Source of the DNA: Schmidtea nova
Taxonomy: Eukaryota
Direction of reading: 5' to 3'
NCBI GenBank assembly: GCA_044892505.1
Contig: CM097883.1
Location: forward strand, 80,848,001 to 80,912,000
DNA: 64,000 nt
The translations under genes and the position numbers were made by a program. The notes beneath the pieces are model-generated. The model did no database searches, was not told the DNA's origin, and saw nothing but the letters and a program-made list of their open reading frames with translations. This document shows positions 3,344-21,509 of this stretch, piece after piece; position 1 is the stretch's first letter; each line of letters opens with the position of its first letter.

Positions 3344-5975
3344 TATGGAATACAAATCCCGACGTTTTGCAAATCCCGGGATTTCGGGATCGGGAATCTT
3401 TCAATCCCGGGATCATGGGATCCCGAAATTAAATTAACCTTTATCCGATATCTATCCACATATTGTGATCCGCCTATGACATTTCATGGATGTTCACTCT
3501 TTCTTCACTTTTATTATTTTTGACTGAATATTATGAAGACAATGTCACTATATCAGTCTATCGATAAATAAAATAGTACATGAAACAATAGTAGCAGAAA
3601 AACCTTATTATATAAATTTTTAAAGGATTTTGACAAGGTATGTAATTTTATTATGTAACAAAATGTAACATGTTAATTAATTTTATTAAAAAAAGCCTTC
3701 AATAAACACAGTTTTGATAATGTCTCATCTCCGAGGCGTGATCTGATTTTTGTGAGGAATGAACCTCCAGCAGAAAACGGTCTCTCAGCATCTACACTGG
3801 TGGAGGAACACTCATCAATGCTTTGTGAAGAATTTCCACGTTGGCCAACAGTTCTAAATAACTCGAGCTCCCGTTGAATTGTTAACTTCATTAGATTCAC
3901 ACTGGTTGATGACATCTTTTGATGAACAACATGGTTATCTGTGCTCTTTTCCAAAGCAATGCGCAGACGTTCTACCATGCTGTTGGGGATTGTTGATGGT
4001 GGCGCATCCAGGGACACTGTAGATGGCAAAGAATCGGTGTCAGCTCCAGCTACTGTGACATTTAGTCTTTGCTCCAATTTGATCAATGTTATTTTCATCA
4101 TGTTGACTTCGCTTACAGAATCCATATTGCCACCATTGAAAGGCATATAGCCGCTGAGGTAAGTAAACTATGTCTCTCCTTCATGCGTTTCTTCAAACTC
4201 ATTTCAAGTTGGAACCCCAGTGCACTGTTTTGCAATTGGAGATCTTCGATTGCAAACTTCACAGCAGTTTCGGCCATAACTAAGGTACATCTCTGTCCAG
4301 AAAGGGTTTTCACAACCAGTTCCAGTGGTTTCAGGGCAGTCGTGATTTCTTGTTCCGTTTGAATGTCATCGTTTGTAAGTTGAATCTCCAGGCCTAAGAA
4401 GGCCAATGTCTTTTCTCATCGACTCTTTAACCTCTAGAAATCTTTTCAGAATTGCAATTAGGGAATTCCATCGTGTTTTGACATCCAAAACAAGGCATAG
4501 CTCTTTCCCAAGGTCTTCTTTGGCAAATCTTTGCAACAAATCATTCTTCACTGGACTTCTACGAATCAGCTTCACCATGTTACGTACTTTTTGATGACAG
4601 AATTTAAAGAGCCAAGATAAAATTCATTGGTGACTTCAACATCAATGCACACATCGAAACCGGCATCTTCAACGTCATCGGTAGAATTTCAGTCGTCATT
4701 AGATTGGCTACTTTCACTCTGCTCTGGTTCTGGTGCCGAAACGAATGATGATTTTTTGAGGTATAGAACATCGCAAACTGCTTAATGGACTCCATGGGCA
4801 TAACAAAGCTGGTGTTCGCAGTTCATCAACTTTCCAAATTTTACCATGACTGAAGCAGCATCAGTTGTACAGCAGATAACATCTGTTTTAATGTCCAGAT
4901 CAAATTGTGATGCTCTTTGAACAACCATTTCTTTGCATAATTCAGCAGTCATCGATCCTTTGATACGAGTGAGCCCTAGATGATGGACTGTTCTGTCAAA
5001 CATGTGAACATTGATGTTTGCATATCGCTTGTTGTTGACACCAGTCCATTCATCTACTGTAAGAGGGAATTTTTCACATTGCTCATGTCGTCGATACAAA
5101 TCTTCCTTTATTTGCAGTTCAATTTTCAAAGCGTAGTCCATTACCTTCTGTCTAATTGTCACAGCCGATAGGGGAACGTCCAATCATCTTGCTGCTAGTC
5201 CGGCCTGAATATCCTTTGAAGTAATGAAAACCTTGAATGGGAGTCCGTCTTTAGCTGTCATGTGCGCTAGAATTTCATCAAGGGACGGCTTGGAAACTGA
5301 AAAATATTCAGTTATTACTGGGATTTTTCGCTTCTTGCAGTCGGGCTCCTCCGAAACCTCGCGTTGAGAATGTGTTTCCCCGTTCGTTCTCAAGTCAATT
5401 TGGTGAATGGTTCTAAGGTGGGTTAAGAGGCCTTTAGTGGATCCACTTTTCGTGTTATTCTTCTTGAAGCACTTCTTGCATTTTGCTTCGTCCCTGTTTT
5501 CTTTCACAAAATATTGCCAGGCTTTTGACATGGAGGGCTGATATAGAATTTGAAATGCTAAAAATAACGTAAAATGAAATTATAAAATTCTTGGTAAATT
5601 ACTTGGTAAAAATGAAAATTGAAGTGAACAACTAAAGGCAAGTGTTAAATAAAACAGACCCACGCTTAAAAGTTCAATGAAACTAAGCCTTTATATAAAG
5701 TGGGATGAGGTGTGGGTGATTTCCCGTATAATAAAAGTATTTGATTATGTCAATGATTAACAATATATTTAAATTATATTGTTAAAGCTTGTTTATTAAA
5801 TCCTATATAAAATAACGAAATATAATTATTAATTTCAAACTAAAGAATGTATATTATTTTAATTAAACAATATTAACTACCGATCCCGGGATTAAATGTT
5901 TTTAATCCCGGGATTGGAATGACATGAGAAATAACCGAATCCCGTGATTTCGGGATCCCGGGATTATAAACCCTA
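3344..5975 (-). mobile_element. Near full-length hAT transposon nested in the solo LTR
   Basis: 8-bp TSD ATAATAAC (3336-3343 / 5976-5983). Ends TATGG.../...CCCTA. ATCCCGGGAT subterminal repeats at both ends. Confidence 0.9.
3673..5531 (-). pseudogene. hAT transposase with in-frame stop and frameshifts
   Basis: BED finger (AWQYF..AKCKKC..GSTKGLLTHLRTIH), LTVDEWT, TTDAASVM, CYAHGVH, DVKTRWNS and dimerisation motif SVDAERPFS..IRSRLGDETL. Confidence 0.92.
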
Positions 5976-9930: not shown

Positions 9931-9967
9931 AACACGAAAATATATTTTATAGCTTTATTTACAAATT

Positions 9968-12900
9968 TTATTTTTCTATTTTCGTTTTGTTTTTGTGCAA
10001 TCTATCATTTCTTCGACGTTTAGTAATCCAAGTCCGGATTTGTTTCTCACTTAATTTCAATTCCTTAGCATATTTCTTAAAAACATGCTGTGTTATCTGA
10101 GTGTGCTGAAAAATAATATATAAATAAAATATTATATAATGATAGTGAAACCTGGACTGTTTGAAATAGATTTTCCATTTTTTTAAATTGTAACCTCGTA
10201 TATTGGATTCGTTGTTTTCGAGTTTTGCTTCTGATTTTTACCATTTCCTCACCATTACTATTTTCAGTATGGTAACCATCATTATTAATAGAAGCATTTT
10301 CTATTTCAGTCTTTGAGAATTCGTCTTTTACTGTTCGAGAAATATCAACCGATTCCAGTTTGGAAATTACATTTTTAACTGTCTGGGTTTTATCGGGATT
10401 ATAAACTTTAGCTATCCATTTACGGAAATAGGGAATTAATTCAAACATATTTGTTGGTGCGAGTACCATAGACTCAAATCTACAAATCGTTGTTTGACTG
10501 AAATCACTTTTCAAATAATATTTCATAGATATGCCAACTTCAGATTGGGTAACTCCTATATTTAAAAAAAATAGAATTAGTAATGTAAACTAATTCTGTA
10601 GTCCATTATGTATGGTCGCAACCGGGCTCCTTGAAAAATTAAAATTTGAATTTTGATTAGTAAATAAGTGTAGGACAGGGATCCCAGGACAGATCTTTTA
10701 AAAGACATTGATAAAGCCTTTGAAATTAAAATTTACTATTTGATGTTGGACATTTTAAAATATAAATGAAAAATAGCTGCTATGTATACTAATTACTCAC
10801 ACACACACATTTATTTGTCAATAGAAATATCGGATGATAGTATGAAGCTTTTGCAGATAAAAACCATCACTAGAGGTTCTGCTACCAAGGTTCTGTTAGA
10901 AAAGTTCCGGTACTGAATATAATTGACATTAAAAAATTTAACAATAATTTTGATTGATTTTCCCTTTAAATGTTTTTCAATGAATTACTATCATTATATT
11001 ATTACGTGTTATTTTAAAAATCTATTTTTTGGAACATTGAAATTGATTCAAATATTCCTTATGAAAATTCCGAATTAATTACTGTTGTTGAGGAATTATT
11101 AAAGAAAACCGTCAAAAATTACGCATCAAGATATAAAAAAGAAGCCATAAAAATGTAAGAATTTATTAATTGAATAAATATTTTTTATAAATGATAAACG
11201 AGACCAATTTGTCACGTTTTTACGTTTTTAACTTTTTTGTCTGCCTTTCAATTCTCAGTAGATTGGTATAGAAATTATTGAATTCTGATCATTTTTAAAT
11301 TTTTAGAAATTATGTGTAAATTTTTGTGTAAATTGTTTAAAATTATCCATTTTTTCTTTATTTGTTGAAAATATTTCGAAATAATTAATAAATTTTATAT
11401 TTGTTGAAAAAATGTTGAAATTAAATACACCTATCCCCCGTTTTACACGGAAGATAGGTTCCTGAAAAAACCGTGTTAAATGAAAACAATCACAGAAATG
11501 CTTTTTTAGTCATTTATTGAGCAACAATCAAATTCAGTAAAACATAAAAATAGCAGTTTAATCGCATAAAATATTGACAATAATTCATTTAATTTTCAAA
11601 AACAAAAATGTAACATAAAAACAATAAGAAATTCACAGAAAATAATATGAATGTATGTACTACATACTAACATATTGTCTTAATAAGACCTAATTTAACT
11701 TAAATCGCTTTCACTATCACTTTCAACAATAAGTCTTCTTTTTCGAATTTAATTCATTATTTGTCTAAAAATTTTGTAAACCGTGTAAAATCGAAAACGT
11801 GTTAATCGAGCGCCGTGTAAAGCGGGGGATAGGTATATTATTTAAAATTTTTCATAATAAAGATTTCATAACATTACTCAATGTCTAAAATTATGTTTTG
11901 TAGTTTATATAAACCCCAAAATAACTACAAAATTATTACATAATTATAACAACTTAATGATAAATGAAATTTATTTGGACAAATGTGATGTAACCGGATC
12001 AAATATGATGTTTAGGTCAGTCATTATGAAGTATTATGTAATATGCATCAAAGGTTGATTATTACATAACCTCGGGAGTAAGTATCTGACGGGACACATC
12101 ATACTACTGTCGGATCTAGTGATGAAACAAAATGCCAACTTTTACAAGAACCACTCAACTCGCTTCAAAATAATGTTTAAATTAAAAAAAAAATTCCAAC
12201 TAATAAAATTAATTTAAATATAAAATAAAATCACAAATTTACTATTTAATATCAAATAAAAATATTCGGGTGCTATAATAAATAATTTATATAAAATATG
12301 AAAATTTAAAATTAAAGGTGAAAAAAATAAAAAAAATAATAATATTATAATTAATTTAAATATAAAATCAAATCACAAATTTACTATTTAATATCAAATA
12401 AAAATTTTCGGGTGCTATAATAAATAATTTATATAAAATATAAAAATTTAAAAAAAAATTAAAGGTGAAAAAAATAAAAAAAAATAATAATATTATAATT
12501 AATTTAAATATAAAATAAAATCACAAATTTACTATTTAATATCAAATAAAAATTTTCGGGTGCTATAATAAATAATTTATATAAAATATAAAAATTTAAA
12601 AAAAAATTAAAGGTGAAAAAAATAAAAAAAAATAATAATATTATAATTAATTTAAATATAAAATAAAATCACAAATTTACTATTTAATATCAAATAAAAA
12701 TTTTCGGGTGCTATAATAAATAATTTATATAAAATATAAAAATTTAAAAAAAAATTAAAGGTGAAAAAAATAAAAAAAAATAATAATATTATAATTAATT
12801 TAAATATAAAATAAAATCACAAATTTACTATTTAATATCAAATAAAAATATTCGGGTGCTATAATAAATAATTTATATAAAATATGAAAATTTTAAAAAA

Positions 12901-13508
12901 AAATTAAAGGTGAAAAAAATAAAAAAAAATAATAATATTATAATTAATTTAAATATAAAATCAAATCACAAATTTACTATTTAATATCAAATAAAAATTT
13001 TCGGGTGCTATAATAAATAATTTATATAAAATATAAAAATTTAAAAAAAAATTAAAGGTGAAAAAAATAATAATATTATAATTAATTTAAATATAAAATA
13101 AAATCACAAATTTACTATTTAATATCAAATAAAAATATTCGGGTGCTATAATAAATAATTTATATAAAATATAAAAATTTAAAAAAAAATTAAAGGTGAA
13201 AAAAATAATAATATTATAATTAATTTAAATATAAAATAAAATCACAAATTTACTATTTAATATCAAATAAAAATATTCGGGTGCTATAATAAATAATTTA
13301 TATAAAATATGAAAATTTAAAAAAATAATAATAATAATATTATAATTTTACAATATTATAATAATAATATAATTAATTTTAACCAACCTAAATCTTGTCG
13401 AAATTGTTTGAATTCTGAAGTGAATTGTTTAATGAAATCCAAATCAAATACCATAGATTGATCCAATAAGATATTCGAGGGTTCTTGTTTATAAGTCGTT
13501 GAAGGGTT
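9968..13508 (-). CDS. Divergent POU-homeobox transcription factor. Exons 13508-13388, 10555-10152 and 10105-9968; 5' exon(s) unresolved
   Basis: GT-AG spliced, phase-consistent, stop-free frame. POU-specific domain DLDFIKQFTSEFKQFRQDL|GVTQSEVGISMKYYLKSDFSQTTICRFESMVLAPTNMFELIPYFRKWI. Homeodomain RKQRIQYTRLQFKKMENLFQTVQ|HTQITQHVFKKYAKELKLSEKQIRTWITKRRR. Introns of 2.8 kb and 46 bp. Confidence 0.9.
11428..11835. mobile_element. Tc1/pogo-type MITE in the POU intron
   Basis: TIRs CACCTATCCCCCGTTTTACACGG / CCGTGTAAAGCGGGGGATAGGTA with TA flanks. Confidence 0.85.
12210..13330. repeat. Tandem array of 8 units of 138-149 bp in the POU intron
   Basis: Anchor CGGGTGCTA at 12267, 12409, 12557, 12705, 12853, 13002, 13140 and 13278. 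Confidence 0.95.
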
Positions 13509-13753
13509 CTGAAAAATAGTATTTTCAATGGTTTGTTTTGATTGAAATTTAGTTTAATCACACAACTTAAATTAAATTTTATTAAGAAATAAATATTTTC
13601 AGAGAGTGCCATTTTGGCATTTATCACACCATTTCTTAGTACCTCTCAAACAATCAAGAGTTTGGTTTCAACTTCCGTTGTCCGGATTAACGAAGTTATA
13701 ATAATAAATTACAGTGAAATGTTTATTTCAAGCAGCTTCCAAATCTTTATTAA

Positions 13754-13908
13754 NNNNNNNNNNNNNNNNNNNNNNNNNNNNNNNNNNNNNNNNNNNNNNN
13801 NNNNNNNNNNNNNNNNNNNNNNNNNNNNNNNNNNNNNNNNNNNNNNNNNNNNNNNNNNNNNNNNNNNNNNNNNNNNNNNNNNNNNNNNNNNNNNNNNNNN
13901 NNNNNNNN
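13754..13908. other. Assembly gap (N run)
   Basis: Run of N. Confidence 1.
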
Positions 13909-14307
13909 CTCAGCAATGTTTATTAAATGAAATATTTCGATCTAAAAAAGATCCTGATCACTCCAATACGAAATTCTTTCCAATAGATTTATTGCTTGAT
14001 ATTTTCTTTCTCCTGAATTCTGATTTAAAATTAATTAGTGAAACAAATTAAGCTTTATTCTGAAGAAATAAAATAATATTTATTTATTAATTTTCAATAA
14101 TTAGAGCGTTTTTTCTTTAAAAAAATTAAAAAAATCTTTATGAATTTCTCAAGGATAAATCTCATTTTGAATTTTAATTTTTAACATTTTATTCTTAGCT
14201 ATTATGAAGACGACGTTAATCTGGCTCAGATTGAAATTATAAATGCAAATTGTTTTGTCGTTAGTAGAGTTTTTTAAAATATAATAATAAGGTAACAGTG
14301 TTAAGTC

Positions 14308-14487
14308 NNNNNNNNNNNNNNNNNNNNNNNNNNNNNNNNNNNNNNNNNNNNNNNNNNNNNNNNNNNNNNNNNNNNNNNNNNNNNNNNNNNNNNNNNNNNN
14401 NNNNNNNNNNNNNNNNNNNNNNNNNNNNNNNNNNNNNNNNNNNNNNNNNNNNNNNNNNNNNNNNNNNNNNNNNNNNNNNNNNNNNNN
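14308..14487. other. Assembly gap (N run)
   Basis: Run of N. Confidence 1.
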
Positions 14488-14945
14488 TTTTTATTGTTAA
14501 TATTATTAATTATTATTTTATTTTTATTGCTATTAATTATTTTTATTATTATTATTATTATTATTATTTAAGCAAACATGGCAATGATTTAATTCAAGTA
14601 AAACGTCATTTATATAACAACCGAACAATATATTTCGACAGACTCTGCCATCATCAGATGTCCATAAAAATATGCTAAATTTAGGCTAAACAAACAAATT
14701 AGAAAATATAATTAGATAAATATTATTAAATTGTTTTATTTTTTTAAAATTTTATACCCAAACATTTTTAAAAATATACAATTTAATTTGTCAAGCAACA
14801 AACCACAAATTAATTTTTAAAAATAATTAATTATTTAAAATTTCCAAAATATTTAAAACAAATATATATTTTTAAACAAAGAAAATTATGTATTAAATTT
14901 TAACCAAAATATACTAATTCAATTCAATACAACAAAATACACAAA

Positions 14946-15600
14946 CTATTTAAAAACATTCAAAATGCACGTGTTCACAGAATTCTGTACATTAATTTTA
15001 GGATTCAACGATCTCATCAACAACGCTTCACATATAATGGGTTTATAATGATTATTAAGATTTTTCGATAAGATTTTAAAATCAGATATATCAATCTTTC
15101 TGTTACAGATTTTATTATTATCACTAATATTGGACACTCCTTTCGTTCGACCATGTTCAAGAACTCGAGTACAGAGATGACGGGTAATCTCTCTAATGTA
15201 TGTAACATTACACCCATTATATGTAAATTGATAAACGATATTTGAACACAATCCAGCCGGAATTTGTGACTTATTAAAAAACACACTACTCACTTTGTAC
15301 GAATTGGAGACAATCCTAAAGTTTAAACCACTCAATTGCTTTCCTATCTTCCTTTTATACCCTCCGAAACCGACAATACCATCGTGAATTTAGGATTTTA
15401 TTGTTTGAAAGATCCTATGCTACTATTCACTACATCATCCAAATTATCATTATTATTACAATCACGTTTACAAGGATCATTAGGATTATTTATACCGTAT
15501 TATTTAACCGTTTGTCTCATCATTATTATCATCAAAAATAGTTTTGAATAACCATTCTTTATTAACAGTTCCTCTAGTGTATCTATACTTTTTATAGAAA
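14946..15600 (-). pseudogene. Penelope-like element 3' part: RT thumb plus GIY-YIG endonuclease
   Basis: LLIKNGYSK, then SNIVYQFTYNGCNVTYIREITRHLCTRVLEH and ICEALLMRSLNPKINVQ. Confidence 0.85.
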
Positions 15601-15735
15601 TTTTGAAAGTAGAAGACAAACAGTTAACAAAACAAGACTTTATAGAACTTCTAAAATTAGCAATAAATTCAGATATTGTCATAATTAAAGAAAAACCATT
15701 CAAAAAAATTCATGGATTAGCCATGGGTAATCTGT
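15600..15735 (+). pseudogene. Inverted Penelope RT fragment
   Basis: Plus-strand LTKQDFIELLKLAINSDIVIIKEKPFKKIHGLAMGN. Confidence 0.65.
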
Positions 15736-16421
15736 AAACTTGCAAACATGACGTATGAGTCTCATTATCGCCCCTGTGCACTAGTAATTAGCTTCACACA
15801 GAAACTGTTTGCAAGCGGACCTGTCTTATTTTATTTATTATTTCAATCACTTCAAATGTTTATCGGATGATGATTAATAATTCACTAATTGAATAAAAAG
15901 AAATATATTAATTTTTTTCGGTACTTAAAAATGGCTAAATAGTCATAAATAAAGAAGACTCTTAACGACTCTTATTGAATGAAAACCGCTTTATTTCTGA
16001 CAAAGATTATTGTTCTGCACTCCTATAACATATTCGCTTAATTTTCGTTCTTAATTGAAGTAGATGTGAATCTTTTTCCTAAATATACTTTAAATCGTTC
16101 TTATAGATAGCCTTATTTTAGTCTTTCTTTCCCGTAATTTATGCTCTTTGGTTTATAGGTTAGTTTTTTATGAATCATGGAAATCTAAATCAATGTCGTT
16201 TTGGATTTAATTAACAAAATCTTGAAACCGAGAATTATGATGATTAAAATATATCAAATTCCTTACACTCTGATCAGCTTCCAAAACCATTTTTATCAAA
16301 AATCCCTGCGCTCCATCCGACAATATTCACCTCACATAAAATCACAACATTTTGCTTCTTTTTAATTAAATGATTATCCAATAAAATGAATATATAATCG
16401 AATCATAAATTGACTATTTAA

Positions 16422-17331
16422 CTCTCCCTTTATATTTGGGGTCAAAATTGTCCCAGGCCGAATTTAGATTAAAATAATTAAAAAACTTGTTGATAGATTG
16501 GGCTGATATTTGTTGACTTTTTAAATGCACATTCAAAGAGTAAAAGAACGGTATTTTTGAAAGTTGTTATCCATCCATCATCATTTAATTGCTAATCTTT
16601 CAAAATTTTAATTGAGTTTTTTTTCAAGAAAATGACCGAAAGAGATTCAGGGATGAGGTTTTTGATAATTTTGAGGACTTAACGGATATCGAAGATGAAG
16701 AATCAGCAGAAATCGAACAACAATTAGGAGAAAATGATGAAATTGAAGATAGTGATGATGAAATCCCTCAAAATGATACTTTGGTTAGTAAATCTGGCGA
16801 AATAGTTTTGTCAATATCTGAAGAACCTTCTCGAAGACTTCTAGCTAGAAATATAATACGAGAACAAGCACGAATATTGATCGAATCTGAGATTATTTTC
16901 AACAATTTTGTTGCAGCGAAATTCTCGACATAACGATAAAGCATACTAATGAAAAGGCCGCTAAGACAAAACTTGATCATCAATGTTGAACCATCTACTT
17001 CTTCAGAAAAAAGGAAAAGAGAAAGATGTTTTTACTGCCCTCGTAATTTAGGTAGAAAAAGCAATGTTAATTGTAATGATTGTGCTAATTGTGTTTGTAA
17101 GGAACATTGCAGCCAAAAAGTGTTGTGCAATTCTTGCTCAGGTGCAACTCGTGATGATGAAAGTGATGATTGTGATTATGAATAGCCTTAAAATTGATGT
17201 AATTTGCTTAAATTGATAACCTTCTCATTAAATACATAAAGTTTCATGTTTTTTAAAAAAAGTTTTCTATTTGGGACATTTTTGACCCCAGATATAATAT
17301 AAGCAATTTTTTATCTGATATAAAGGAAGAG
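16422..17331 (+). mobile_element. Internally deleted piggyBac element
   Basis: TTAA on both flanks. TIRs CTCT(C/T)CCTTTATAT. Subterminal IR TGGGGTCAAAA..GTCCCA. Acidic N-terminus joined directly to the Cys-rich tail RCFYCPRNLGRKSNVNCNDCANCVCKEHC. Confidence 0.9.
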
Positions 17332-17682
17332 TTAACATCAAGTAGAAAATAACGATTGAAATACACACTGAAAATTGGTGTTGTATATATAATGTGAAAA
17401 CTTTTGATTTACATGTCTTAGAAAATGAAAATATCTGAAATAGAAAAGAATATTAAAGTTGTCACATCGATTGTCTCTTATTGTGAGTAAATGAGAGATT
17501 TCGTAAATTCTTAATAGTTTTATGTTTTATAAAGATATTTTAAATTTATAGTAGTAATTGTAATGATGCAGATTCTTGTGCGTCATGACCTATGACATCA
17601 TAGGTTAATGGCAACGTATTATTTCAATAAATATTACGTTGCGTTAAATAAATCTCATGATTCTTCCATTTGTCTTTTAATA

Positions 17683-18316
17683 ATGGATGTACAAGCTATC
17701 TGGGCTATATTGAAAAATATTGAGATCTTCCCTAGGTATTCGGGAGAAAGAGATGTTGTCAAGTGGACACAGGAATTTGAATTGAATAGTCAATAGCTAG
17801 GAGCCTTCTCACATGGGTAAGCTACTTCCCTTGCGTTTACAAGGAGCAGCTTTAGTCATATGGCGCTATTAGACAGATCTCGCAAAGAGCAGCTACTCGG
17901 ACTCGAAGGTTACTCTGTTGAAGACTTTCGGTTTAAGCCCGTTCGCTGCATTCGAAGCATTTAAATTGAGGAGATAACAATCAGGCGAAACTGTGGACCC
18001 ATATTTTAGCTCTTAAAAACGCCTCGGGGAGCTGGCAAGAACAGGCAATGAAGGAATCGTCGTGGCTTTCGTTGTTGGTCTCCCAGCCGCAGTTTCGAAA
18101 GCATTGCAAATTACGGGGATGAGCGGCAAGGAGTTTTTAATCGAAAAAGCTCAAATACTACTGGAGGGTAAAATTCCAAGTGAAGCGCAAAACTGGAAAA
18201 CCGAAGCTATGAGCGCTATTGCATCGAAAAAGAAATTCAAATGTTTCACATGTGGTAAAGAAGATCATTTCGCCAGAGACTGTCGGCGTCCGGAAAACTT
18301 CGTGGGGAAGCAATAA
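17683..18316 (+). pseudogene. gag with CCHC zinc knuckle
   Basis: FPRYSGERDVVKW..., AFVVGLP and CFTCGKEDHFARDC. Stops and frameshifts present. Confidence 0.85.
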
Positions 18317-18345
18317 GCGCCGGCAGTTTCCCTCAGAACAACAAG

Positions 18346-18800
18346 GTGTCAAGCGTCAGGATGATTAATGTACGAATCGAGGGAAAACACTTTATTGCTT
18401 TGATAGAATCAGGCAGTCCTCAGTCGATTCTGCAAAAATATCGGTTCAATGGAAACTTCGTGTCTAGTAAATGGATCGTTACTGTTGATGATCGAAAATT
18501 AGAATGTCGGGAATCCTCACCAGTCGATCTCACAATTCAAGGCTCTTCAATTGTTTTATCGTGCTTGGTGGTGGATGAGTTGCCAATGGACATTGATCTC
18601 ATTTTAGGAATGGACGCAATTGTTCGAATGGGCGACTTATACATCGATGGAAATAAAGCTATTTTCAGGAACCCAGTATCGTTGGCGGCGCCATTGTGTC
18701 TCACTGAATGCATCGACGACGATGATTTTGAAGCCAATCTTGATGGGAAAAATGGAGTACATTGGAAGTGGTTTGGAGGGTCACTGACGCTGAGAAATCA
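18346..18800 (+). pseudogene. Retroviral-type aspartic protease
   Basis: INVRIEGKHFIALIESGSPQSIL (degenerate LxDSG) and DLILGMDAI. Confidence 0.8.
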
Positions 18801-18953
18801 ACGCGGGATGTACCATTTGAAAGAACATGTGAACGTGGATCTTTTTCTTTCAATTGTAGATTGCGGGCTTAGCATATTTTGCATCTGGAAGAAAATTTCT
18901 AATGACGATTCTGTTTTTATTATCAATATACTGGGTTTCGGGAAAAGAGTTCA

Positions 18954-19458
18954 GTGAAAGAAATTCTGTCGGATATCGGGACGAACTTTCGATCTGTAGA
19001 GTTCAAACGTTTTGCAGATATGTGGGACGAATATCTAAAATATCGTTTCGCCTACAGTCACAAAGGGAATGACATTACAGAAAGAAACCACAGAACTATC
19101 AAGCGGATAGTTGCAAGATCAAGCTGTGACCCGCTAATCGCGGTTTTCTTTTATAATATCACTCCTCATTCAGGCTTGGAGGAACGTTGGAGGTATGGAG
19201 GATAATACAGTACCTGAAAAGATGCATTTTGGTCGAACGTTGAGGTGTCCAAAATTTCTGGGGGACAAAGACGAATTTCATAGCCACGGCAATTATGATT
19301 CAAAACAGTATGCTGTCAGGAAGCTCGTACTCGTCAAGCCACCGAATCGAAAACTCAACATATCTTTGACCATTGGTACGGTCAAAGTAGAAGTCGATGG
19401 CACTCCGAGACACGTCAGTCACCTTCGAAGGGTCTCCAACTGCGTTGATATTACTTAA
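18954..19458 (+). pseudogene. Integrase C-terminal fragment
   Basis: EILSDIGTNFRSVEFKRF and YSHKGNDITERNHRTIK. Confidence 0.85.
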
Positions 19459-21509
19459 CGAACAGAACTGATAAGCGACAAGGACCTAGATGATACAGAA
19501 TTTATTAGTGTAGTTTCACCAAGAACGAGAGCCTATGAAAGACTATGAAATTGATCCTAAGGTCACGGGATGAAGATTCTTGTTAGTCATGACCTATGAC
19601 ACCATAGGTTAATGGCAACGTAATATTTCATTAAATATTACGTTGCAGTTCTTCTTCGAGATATAAATAATTGTGCGTTAAATAAATATCATGATTCTTC
19701 CATTTGTCTTTTAGCAATGGATGCACAATAATATAATTTGTTATAAAATAAAATTATAGGATTTTTGTGAATTATTTGTTAAAGGTAAAATTTTACAAAT
19801 TCTTGTTTTAAAAAGTTTAAATTTAAAAAATAACAATTAACTCTTTCAATACAATTCTATCAAATAGATTGAATATTGTCTTTATCATCTGTTTTTCCCA
19901 TAATTTATGAATCTTTAACTTTAATTAAAGATGCAATTTGACTATTAACTTCAGAATAATTAATCATACCTTCTTCAAGCTTTCTAAATCTTGTTCCGTT
20001 ATCAATATAAAATCTCTACATCGTAAACAATCATCCAAAATGGGTATATTATTATCGTGATTATTCATATAAGCTTGGAGATCTTTGTTTTGATTGACTA
20101 AAAACTCATTTAATGTCCCAATCTCTGCTTGCTTTTCGGTGACACTGCTAGACAATGAAGCAGATATTTCTTTGGTTAAGATTTGTAAATCAGAATTCGT
20201 AAAACTTGTGTTTTCATTGCAATCATTATTTGTTGATAATCTAATTGGAACAGAAATCTACATTCATATTTACTACGCACAATATACATAGAATCACATC
20301 ATTACTCGATTTCCATTATTATCCTTTAATACAAATTTGCACGGTTTATCATTTTCTGTATATTCAGTGGGAAATAAAAAACATTTCATGATATTTATCA
20401 ATTGTATTTAAGCAGTAAAATTTTAATTACACTAATAAAAGAAAAAATTTCGCAAGCATATAAATATTAAATTATTTTTTATAATATTGTTTTTTATAGA
20501 TTGACTAGGAGAAAAAATAATTTGATTTCTTAAAATTTTTAGATAAATTTGAAATATTTCATATTTTGTAAATTATATAAACAAAGATATATTATTAATT
20601 TGATATTGTTTGAAGAAAATTAATTAAATTACTCATATGTAGTCAAAAATTTGATCAATAAAAATAATTGTATAGTTTTTTAGATAATAATGTTTTCATT
20701 AGTTTTGCTTTAGTGCATTTTTTCAACTCCAATTTAAGTTGTAAATGATTTAAGAACAAGATTTTAACTTTCGGTTTATCTAAATGTTGACACAAACACT
20801 TAACCCATCTAGCATATGTTTAATAGCTATTTTCAAGCCGTTTTTAAAAAACCCTTTTAATTACTATTTACTAAATTTTAGAAGATTTGTGAAACTAAGA
20901 ACTTTGTATAATTGTTGGATTTGTTCATTATGTTCCGTTCAACTCTTGGTACACCTAGGGAGAGAAACTGTGGTTAATACTGATGAGTTGTTTGTTTTGA
21001 GTCGGTTTATTATCTGACTTCTCGGGCTCCTATAATTGAGAAATCGCCAAAGCCCAATACAACAAATTTTATTAAATTCCATTAATATACAATGATAACA
21101 TTTAGATTTTCTGCACAAACACAGCACTCTCTTTTCTGTTTAGCGATAGTGTTTGGTCTACCAAAGGTAGATAGCTTTTTCTAGTGCGCTTCTTGATTCG
21201 CTAATGTTGAATTCCACACAATCATCTTTTTAGTTTAATTACCAAATGTGGTTTTCAATACAGGATAAACTAATAAGTTTTGTCCAGTGCTCATACTCAG
21301 CTTTACAATGCTGTAATGAGTGTATAGGTCTGCAACCTTGTGTGTCTATGCTATATATGTTGTAGATTTGTAAAATTAAAAAAATGACTTATTAATAATT
21401 TTGAACATTGCTATTAATTTTGATATATCTTACATGGATTAGGCACTTTTAATAAATTTCTTGTTTGACTGAAATACTTTTTGTTTTCATTAGAATACGT
21501 CGATTTGAA

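Follow-up and report, generated by a model that had tools for sequence, protein, structure and literature searches.

In the canonical POU factors Oct-1/POU2F1, Oct-6/POU3F1, Oct-4/POU5F1 and Pit-1, a POU-specific domain is followed by a homeodomain. The POU-specific domain of Oct-1 reads ATGC via Q44, T45 and R49, aided by R20, Q27, S43, T46 and N59. Asn51, the key adenine contact of homeodomains (PMC3460184), is almost invariant among them and specifies the adenine within the TAAT core. Here we describe a POU gene with lysine at this position. It lies on the minus strand of a 64,000-nucleotide (nt) stretch of the Schmidtea nova genome (GenBank assembly GCA_044892505.1, contig CM097883.1, positions 80,848,001 to 80,912,000), which we call the window and in which positions are counted from its first letter. 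The sequences make it very probable that the gene is real, is under constraint and belongs to a POU subfamily with Lys51. Our full reading, to which we assign a probability of roughly 0.6, is that it is a working, single-copy, five-exon gene of a fast-evolving, lineage-restricted POU subfamily, with the mode of DNA binding proposed below.

The protein follows the canonical order of POU-specific domain, linker and homeodomain. Pfam Pou (PF00157) matched exon 4 alone over profile positions 22 to 70 with an Expect value (E-value) of 3e-13 and 49.9 bits (cutoff, 27 bits). Against a profile made from 30 canonical POU proteins, the joined product scored as one domain over profile positions 5 to 149, with 86.7 bits. 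Omitting exon 3 lowered this score to 70.9 bits and removed helix 1 of the POU-specific domain; the 16 bits that exon 3 adds at positions 5 to 21, together with helix 1, show that it belongs to the gene. The POU-specific contact residues R20, Q27, S43-Q44-T45-T46, R49 and N59 are all kept, and the recognition helix SQTTICRFE is identical to that of the four factors named above. Exon 5 holds only part of the homeodomain, and on its own it scored 17.8 bits with Pfam Homeodomain (PF00046), under the cutoff of 22.9 bits.

It is in the homeodomain that the protein departs from the family. Its helix 3 reads RTWITKRRRNDR in place of the POU-type recognition helix RVWFCNRRQKEKR with Cys50, so that W48 and R53 of a typical homeodomain are present while F49 is Ile and N51 is Lys. 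Alignment with the canonical POU genes of the same genome, three POU2/3-like (L002-L004) and two POU4-like (L006-L007) loci that all read RVWFCN(R/Q)RQK, gave F49I, C50T and N51K and marked T47 and R54 as atypical as well. All four major-groove positions are changed (T47, T50, K51 and R54). The N-terminal arm, which reads T-R-K-Q-R, keeps R2, K3 and R5; the core residues Y8, M16, F20, W48 and I49 and the backbone contacts R52, R53 and R57 are likewise kept. The loop between helices 1 and 2 is longer by two residues, which brings the domain to 62 residues from the typical 60. The linker, counted from KWI to homeodomain position 1, has 63 residues compared with 21 to 22 in the canonical paralogues. 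A preliminary description of the locus had already pointed to the recognizable POU-specific domain, the three substitutions with helix 3 WITKRR and the two-residue insertion, all of which we reproduce; it was also right that the linker is long, and its figure of about 70 residues was too high. In a survey of 148 POU proteins with a recognizable helix 3, Asn51 was present in 147 and the Cys50-Asn51 pair in 146, and the only lysine at position 51 was in the relative described next.

An exhaustive HMMER search over 1.84 billion representative sequences yielded a single close relative, a protein of 305 residues (P0001) that is known only as a UniParc record without a name or a recorded encoding contig and is 78% identical over exon 4 (E-value, 1.6e-53). 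The remaining matches were canonical POU proteins with 25 to 40% identity, and the best named relatives, matched weakly, were vertebrate POU5 and POU3 proteins (25 to 30% identity; E-value, 3e-7). A word-based protein search with exon 4 alone found no relatives in the range of 74 to 235 residues. P0001 crosses the same exon 4/5 junction (...SLFQTVK/HTQITPHVY...), and its helix 3 reads IRCWFTKRRR (WFTKRR). It thus has Thr50, Lys51 and Arg54 in common with the window protein, and the change of Phe49 to Ile is confined to this genome. Lysine also stands opposite Asn51 in the HMMER alignments of P0001 to the Oct-6 and Oct-1 crystal-structure chains. Both Pfam families recognize P0001 above their cutoffs of 27 and 22.9 bits (Pou, 56.3 bits; Homeodomain, 32.1 bits).

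The identity between the window protein and this orthologue is unevenly spread. It amounts to 44/48 residues in the POU-specific part, 21/26 in the first, conserved part of the linker and 50/62 in the homeodomain, but only 13/34 in the variable linker, where there is also a 7-residue in-frame indel. The contrast between the domains (81 to 92%) and the variable linker (38%) is significant (Fisher test, P = 2e-7), and the homeodomain differences are mostly conservative (Y/F, L/F, N/S and L/M). At the level of protein sequence, such domain-biased conservation is the pattern of purifying selection, and it supports the earlier suggestion of an intact gene, here with signs of constraint.

The public model of the orthologue has a peculiar N-terminus. 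Its residues 1 to 127 have no counterpart in the window and match instead an unrelated protein of 316 residues (P0182), which is repeat-like, lacks any Pfam family or POU domain and carries no source name. We therefore read the model as a chimera that lacks the upstream exons; POU-specific helix 1 is also absent from it. As a guide to the upstream exons of the window gene, the N-terminus of P0001 was rejected, since it matches nothing in the window.

The next-best genomic match to exon 5 is a second divergent POU gene on chromosome 1 (L008/L014; hereafter L008). Its homeodomain has no intron, its helix 3 reads IRVWMSKRRR (WMSKRR), and Pfam scores both of its domains above the cutoffs given above (Pou, 36.8 bits; Homeodomain, 24.9 bits). 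L008 is 33% identical to the window protein and has a linker of 24 residues compared with 63. The two proteins have in common Lys51, Arg54, the two-residue loop insertion, the sequence ELENLFQTV at the end of homeodomain helix 1, FK(K/Q)FR in POU-specific helix 1, a VI.KL...DI motif in the linker and a homologous N-terminus. In L008 the POU-specific recognition helix reads NESSLSRFE, not SQTTICRFE, and arm positions 2 and 3 are not basic; both of its DNA-reading helices are thus noncanonical. A word-based search with a profile of L008 and P0001 found only P0001 and P0182.

We propose to define a Lys51 POU subfamily by Lys51 with Arg54, the loop insertion, ENLFQTV and a shared N-terminus. The window gene and L008 have all of these features, and P0001 has those of the homeodomain. 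The loop insertion, the shared N-terminus, Lys51/Arg54 and ENLFQTV each support a common origin of the window gene and L008. Judged by these shared features, Lys51 marks a small, lineage-restricted POU subfamily and is not a sign of decay.

A maximum-likelihood tree (LG+C20+F+G4; 151 columns; 43 rows, comprising 40 canonical POU proteins, the window protein, P0001 and L008) places the gene in the same way. The three subfamily proteins are separated by a branch with 99/97 support from the entire canonical set of 40 rows, among them the POU5 clade, POU3 and the POU2/3-like and POU4-like genes of this genome; named POU1, POU2 and POU6 references were outside the sampling. The vertebrate POU5 clade (11 rows) has 99/98 support and the window protein lies outside it, so that in this tree the gene does not group with POU class 5. 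Nor is it nested in the POU3 or POU4-like clades. Most columns of the loop insertion were excluded from the tree, and the insertion therefore counts as separate evidence. The lineage-specific POU group that had been suggested for this gene is thus borne out by two further members with Lys51, Arg54 and the insertion, which stand apart from the canonical proteins.

The structure of the gene is given in Table 1. The five exons join into 1,035 nt with 344 codons (20389..9968), all four introns are of the GT-AG type, and the phases match throughout: exon 1 is 84 nt long, and exon 2 ends in phase 0, matching the phase of the acceptor at 13508, so that the frame continues into exon 3. The two mini-introns are similar in size (46 and 48 nt). 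Exons 1 and 2 were located by a tblastn search of the window with L008, which matched 20377-20063 on the same strand. The 142 N-terminal residues gave a Smith-Waterman score of 95 against the L008 N-terminus; shuffled sequences scored 36.4 ± 6.7 and none of 2,000 reached 95 (z = 8.8). No Pfam family matched this N-terminal region. An in-frame stop lies six codons 5' of the ATG at 20389. Exon 2, like the gene as a whole, is single copy in the genome. The preliminary description had given the gene as 9968-13508, a span that holds its last three exons and misses the two upstream, and had stated that the list of open reading frames (ORFs) lacks the gene, which is incorrect, as most of exon 4 is present there as an ORF of 149 residues (10077..10526). 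Our five-exon model is probably complete, whereas the orthologue is represented in public data by one protein model, which is probably a chimera.

Table 1. Exons, introns and selected features of the Lys51 POU gene and its paralogue. A slash marks an exon-intron junction.
Feature	Position	Strand	Description
Exon 1	20306..20389	minus	28 codons; ATG at 20389; donor CGA/gtaatg, phase 0; homologous to the N-terminus of the L008 ORF
Intron 1	20258..20305	minus	48 nt, GT-AG
Exon 2	19970..20257	minus	288 nt, 96 codons; N-terminal region; donor AAG/gtatga, phase 0
Intron 2	13509..19969	minus	6.46 kb; transposon debris and two N gaps (13754-13908 and 14308-14487)
Exon 3	13388..13508	minus	Acceptor ttttcag/AAC; donor TTAG/gttggt, phase 1; encodes POU-specific helix 1 (DLDFIKQFTSEFKQFRQDLG)
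Intron 3	10556..13387	minus	2.83 kb, repeat-rich
Exon 4	10152..10555	minus	Acceptor aaatatag/GA; donor CAG/gtttca, phase 0
Exon 4, POU-specific helices 2-4	10413-10555	minus	Includes FSQTTICRFE
Exon 4, linker		minus	63 residues, between the two domain parts
Exon 4, homeodomain positions 1-22	10152-10223	minus	
Intron 4	10106..10151	minus	46 nt, GT-AG (CAG/gtttca ... ttttcag/CAC); in the loop between homeodomain helices 1 and 2
Exon 5	9968..10105	minus	Homeodomain helices 2 and 3 (9992-10105); ends IRTWITKRRRNDR; stop TAA 9968-9970
Helix 3 W-I-T-K-R-R	start 10030	minus	Lys51 codon 10019-10021
AATAAA hexamer	9954..9959	minus	8 nt 3' of the stop; candidate polyadenylation signal (direct reading of the sequence)
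Paralogue L008, POU region	G000:C1:431811773-431812315		
Paralogue L008, whole ORF	L008:991-1962		324 residues from the first Met

Intron 4 deserves attention, as it interrupts the homeodomain just before the unusual helix. The uninterrupted homeodomain of L008 is colinear with the spliced window product, which is independent support for the 46-nt intron. Might transcripts use another terminal exon that restores the canonical WFCNRR helix 3, the outcome that had been named as one that would overturn the idea of an atypical gene? We found no point in favor of this alternative and give it almost no credence. A six-frame scan of the 64-kb window for W-x-x-[N/K]-[R/Q/K]-R found only the motif at 10030, the P0001 model uses the same terminal exon, and L008 encodes Lys51 in one uninterrupted ORF. 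The sequence itself is sound: contigs from three public runs (X1, X3 and X4) cover 9933-10700 with zero differing bases, which excludes a sequencing slip, with the proviso that a single study produced all the runs matching this segment and that the data behind the assembly may be among them.

The fold was assessed on the orthologue, for which an AlphaFold2 model of P0001 residues 128 to 305 was made from a 33-row alignment. The homeodomain of this model has predicted local distance difference test (pLDDT) scores above 90 and three helices, at 116-128, 136-146 and 150-177. In the variable linker the model is disordered, and the conserved first third of the linker is weakly predicted to be helical (pLDDT of about 67). 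Foldseek searches with both domains placed POU-DNA complexes on top (POU2F3, Oct4, Pit-1, Oct-1 and Brn-5). For the homeodomain alone, CDX2, HOXB13 and Antp superpose with template modeling scores of about 0.9 and root mean square deviations of about 1 Å. In the model, then, the homeodomain fold is kept.

How would such a protein act? It is best read as a functional POU factor whose homeodomain has a non-TAAT preference or little specificity, its DNA binding being predicted from the residues that it keeps. We hypothesize that the POU-specific domain would dock on an ATGC-type half-site like that of other POU factors and that the homeodomain, without Asn51, would be unable to read the adenine of a TAAT or AAAT half-site. 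The homeodomain might select another, probably G-containing, half-site via Lys51 and Arg54, or it might clamp the DNA with little specificity. With so long a linker, the two domains could be spaced in an unusual way.

Several points weigh against this reading. P0001 is a computed gene model, not a cDNA, with an N-terminus that is chimeric with a repeat-like protein, and constraint was judged from protein identity with P0001. The branches of the tree are very long (6 to 10 changes per site), and long-branch attraction could help to group the window gene with L008; at such lengths the tree by itself leaves room for this effect. The exons were found in eight public runs, all of one study and none recorded as RNA, and all eight also carry the introns. 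Finally, the N188K substitution of NKX2-5, which affects position 51, almost abolishes site binding on protein-binding microarrays (bioRxiv 10.1101/2025.06.20.659510).

The last point makes loss of specific binding a live alternative to changed specificity. The homeodomain would then have lost sequence-specific DNA binding, and the protein would act via its POU-specific domain and protein contacts, for example by competing with canonical POU factors or modulating them. We regard this as unlikely, though well worth weighing. It agrees with the role of Asn51 as the key adenine contact and with NKX2-5 N188K, in which near-complete loss of binding leaves protein-protein interactions intact; the planarian genes 'pou5' and 'pou-p1', possible counterparts of the present genes, have no assigned JASPAR motif and a nominal one, respectively. 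On the other side, the basic residues of the arm and the backbone contacts, W48 included, are all kept. Lys51 and Arg54 are conserved in P0001 and L008 while positions 47, 49 and 50 vary, which suggests selection on the DNA-facing surface and not release from constraint. In addition, the homeodomain is 81% identical between the orthologues, as high as the conserved part of the linker. A dominant-negative role, which had been raised for this gene, gains nothing from the sequence, given the same arm and contacts.

The public runs bear on a different doubt. Since introns are present in all eight exon-bearing runs, these runs look like DNA, and the contigs of four of them are colinear with the genome and have no splice joints. 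The locus could accordingly be an unexpressed or recently dead copy whose integrity is an artifact of joining exons. No RNA run holding the exons was among the public runs matched, the setting is rich in transposons, with repeat-filled introns of 2.8 and 6.5 kb, and the donor of exon 4 (CAG/gtttca) is weak. We nevertheless consider a dead copy highly improbable. Stops occur at a frequency of 0.081 per codon in the local composition, so that an open frame of 344 codons over five exons with consistent phases has a probability of about 2.5e-13, which excludes a chance origin. The conservation relative to P0001 is domain-biased and its substitutions mostly conservative, the exon 4/5 junction is common to P0001, and the spliced product is colinear with L008, whose homeodomain is intronless. 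A working gene thus remains our reading of the locus.

The window is AT-rich (15 to 41% G+C in 2-kb steps), and the scaffold that contains it is a very large one in a genome of 1.25 Gb. Intron 3 contains a 148-bp AT-rich tandem repeat (12185-13325; 7.9 copies; 96% identity) and a 416-bp element (11424-11839) that resembles a miniature inverted-repeat transposable element, with 27-nt terminal inverted repeats that are 93% complementary. Intron 2 contains a retroviral aspartyl protease ORF on the plus strand (18346-18957; 22.9 bits). Farther away, a BED zinc-finger ORF (34.6 bits) lies at 3673-5531 on the minus strand beside ORFs that resemble pieces of a hAT-type transposase.

POU-specific domains of unusual context also turned up among environmental sequences. 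Four proteins from JGI/IMG metagenome contigs of an unidentified eukaryote (P0002, P0004, P0006 and P0007) have two or three tandem POU-specific domains and no homeodomain. Compact eukaryotic contigs from the Tara Oceans marine metagenome (L025-L029) encode POU-specific-only models (P0012, P0022 and P0009) that read SMKK.FGRSFSQTT.CRFEGKQLT. The latter three were considered as distant members of the Lys51 subfamily and left out, as no homeodomain lies within about 1.3 kb downstream.

Among known systems, the canonical POU factors come nearest to the protein and are its best PDB sequence matches (E-value of about 1e-11) and best fold matches. It differs from them in helix 3 (WITKRR in place of WFCNRR), the two extra loop residues, the linker of 63 rather than 21 to 22 residues and the family-specific N-terminus. 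Drosophila inhibitory proteins of the I-POU type have lost basic residues from the N-terminal arm of the homeodomain, whereas the window protein retains R2, K3 and R5. NKX2-5 N188K is the same change of Asn51 to Lys, but there it is a pathogenic human point mutation and the rest of helix 3 is canonical; here Lys51 and Arg54 are both conserved across paralogues. Asn51 is likewise absent from a POU protein of Oikopleura dioica (CAG5098920.1; P0013), another fast-evolving lineage, and hence such a loss in fast-evolving lineages is not unique. Its helix 3 reads WYTRQK (LRNWYTRQKS), with Arg instead of Lys at position 51 and without R53, and nothing suggests that it shares ancestry with the Lys51 subfamily. 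Among the papers searched, none contained the helix 3 motifs and none described a Lys51 POU homeodomain. A natural, conserved Lys51 family that keeps all other requirements for DNA contact lends itself to testing how widely homeodomain recognition can shift.

Possible parallels come from planarians. A catalogue of transcription factors of Schmidtea mediterranea lists ten POU genes, three of them without a JASPAR motif, including the undescribed 'pou5' (SMESG000048750.1); 'pou-p1' (SMESG000032046.1; Önal 2012) has only a nominal JASPAR match with an E-value of 0.02, and the X1 stem-cell fraction is enriched for both genes (PMC9522251, supplementary file 1). By description, 'pou5' and 'pou-p1' may be the counterparts of the window gene and L008, and the name 'pou5' fits the POU5 best matches of P0001. 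We tentatively suggest, as a possibility that we would not yet favor, that Lys51 and Arg54 confer a new, non-TAAT specificity and that the window gene and L008 represent an unrecognized flatworm-restricted POU class, perhaps identical with 'pou5' and 'pou-p1', the stem-cell-enriched genes that have figured in discussions of planarian counterparts of Oct4. If these are indeed the stem-cell-enriched divergent POU genes of planarians, then motif-based network models in which they are given a borrowed motif, of a POU factor or another, would be wrong for them, and the comparison with Oct4 would need rethinking.

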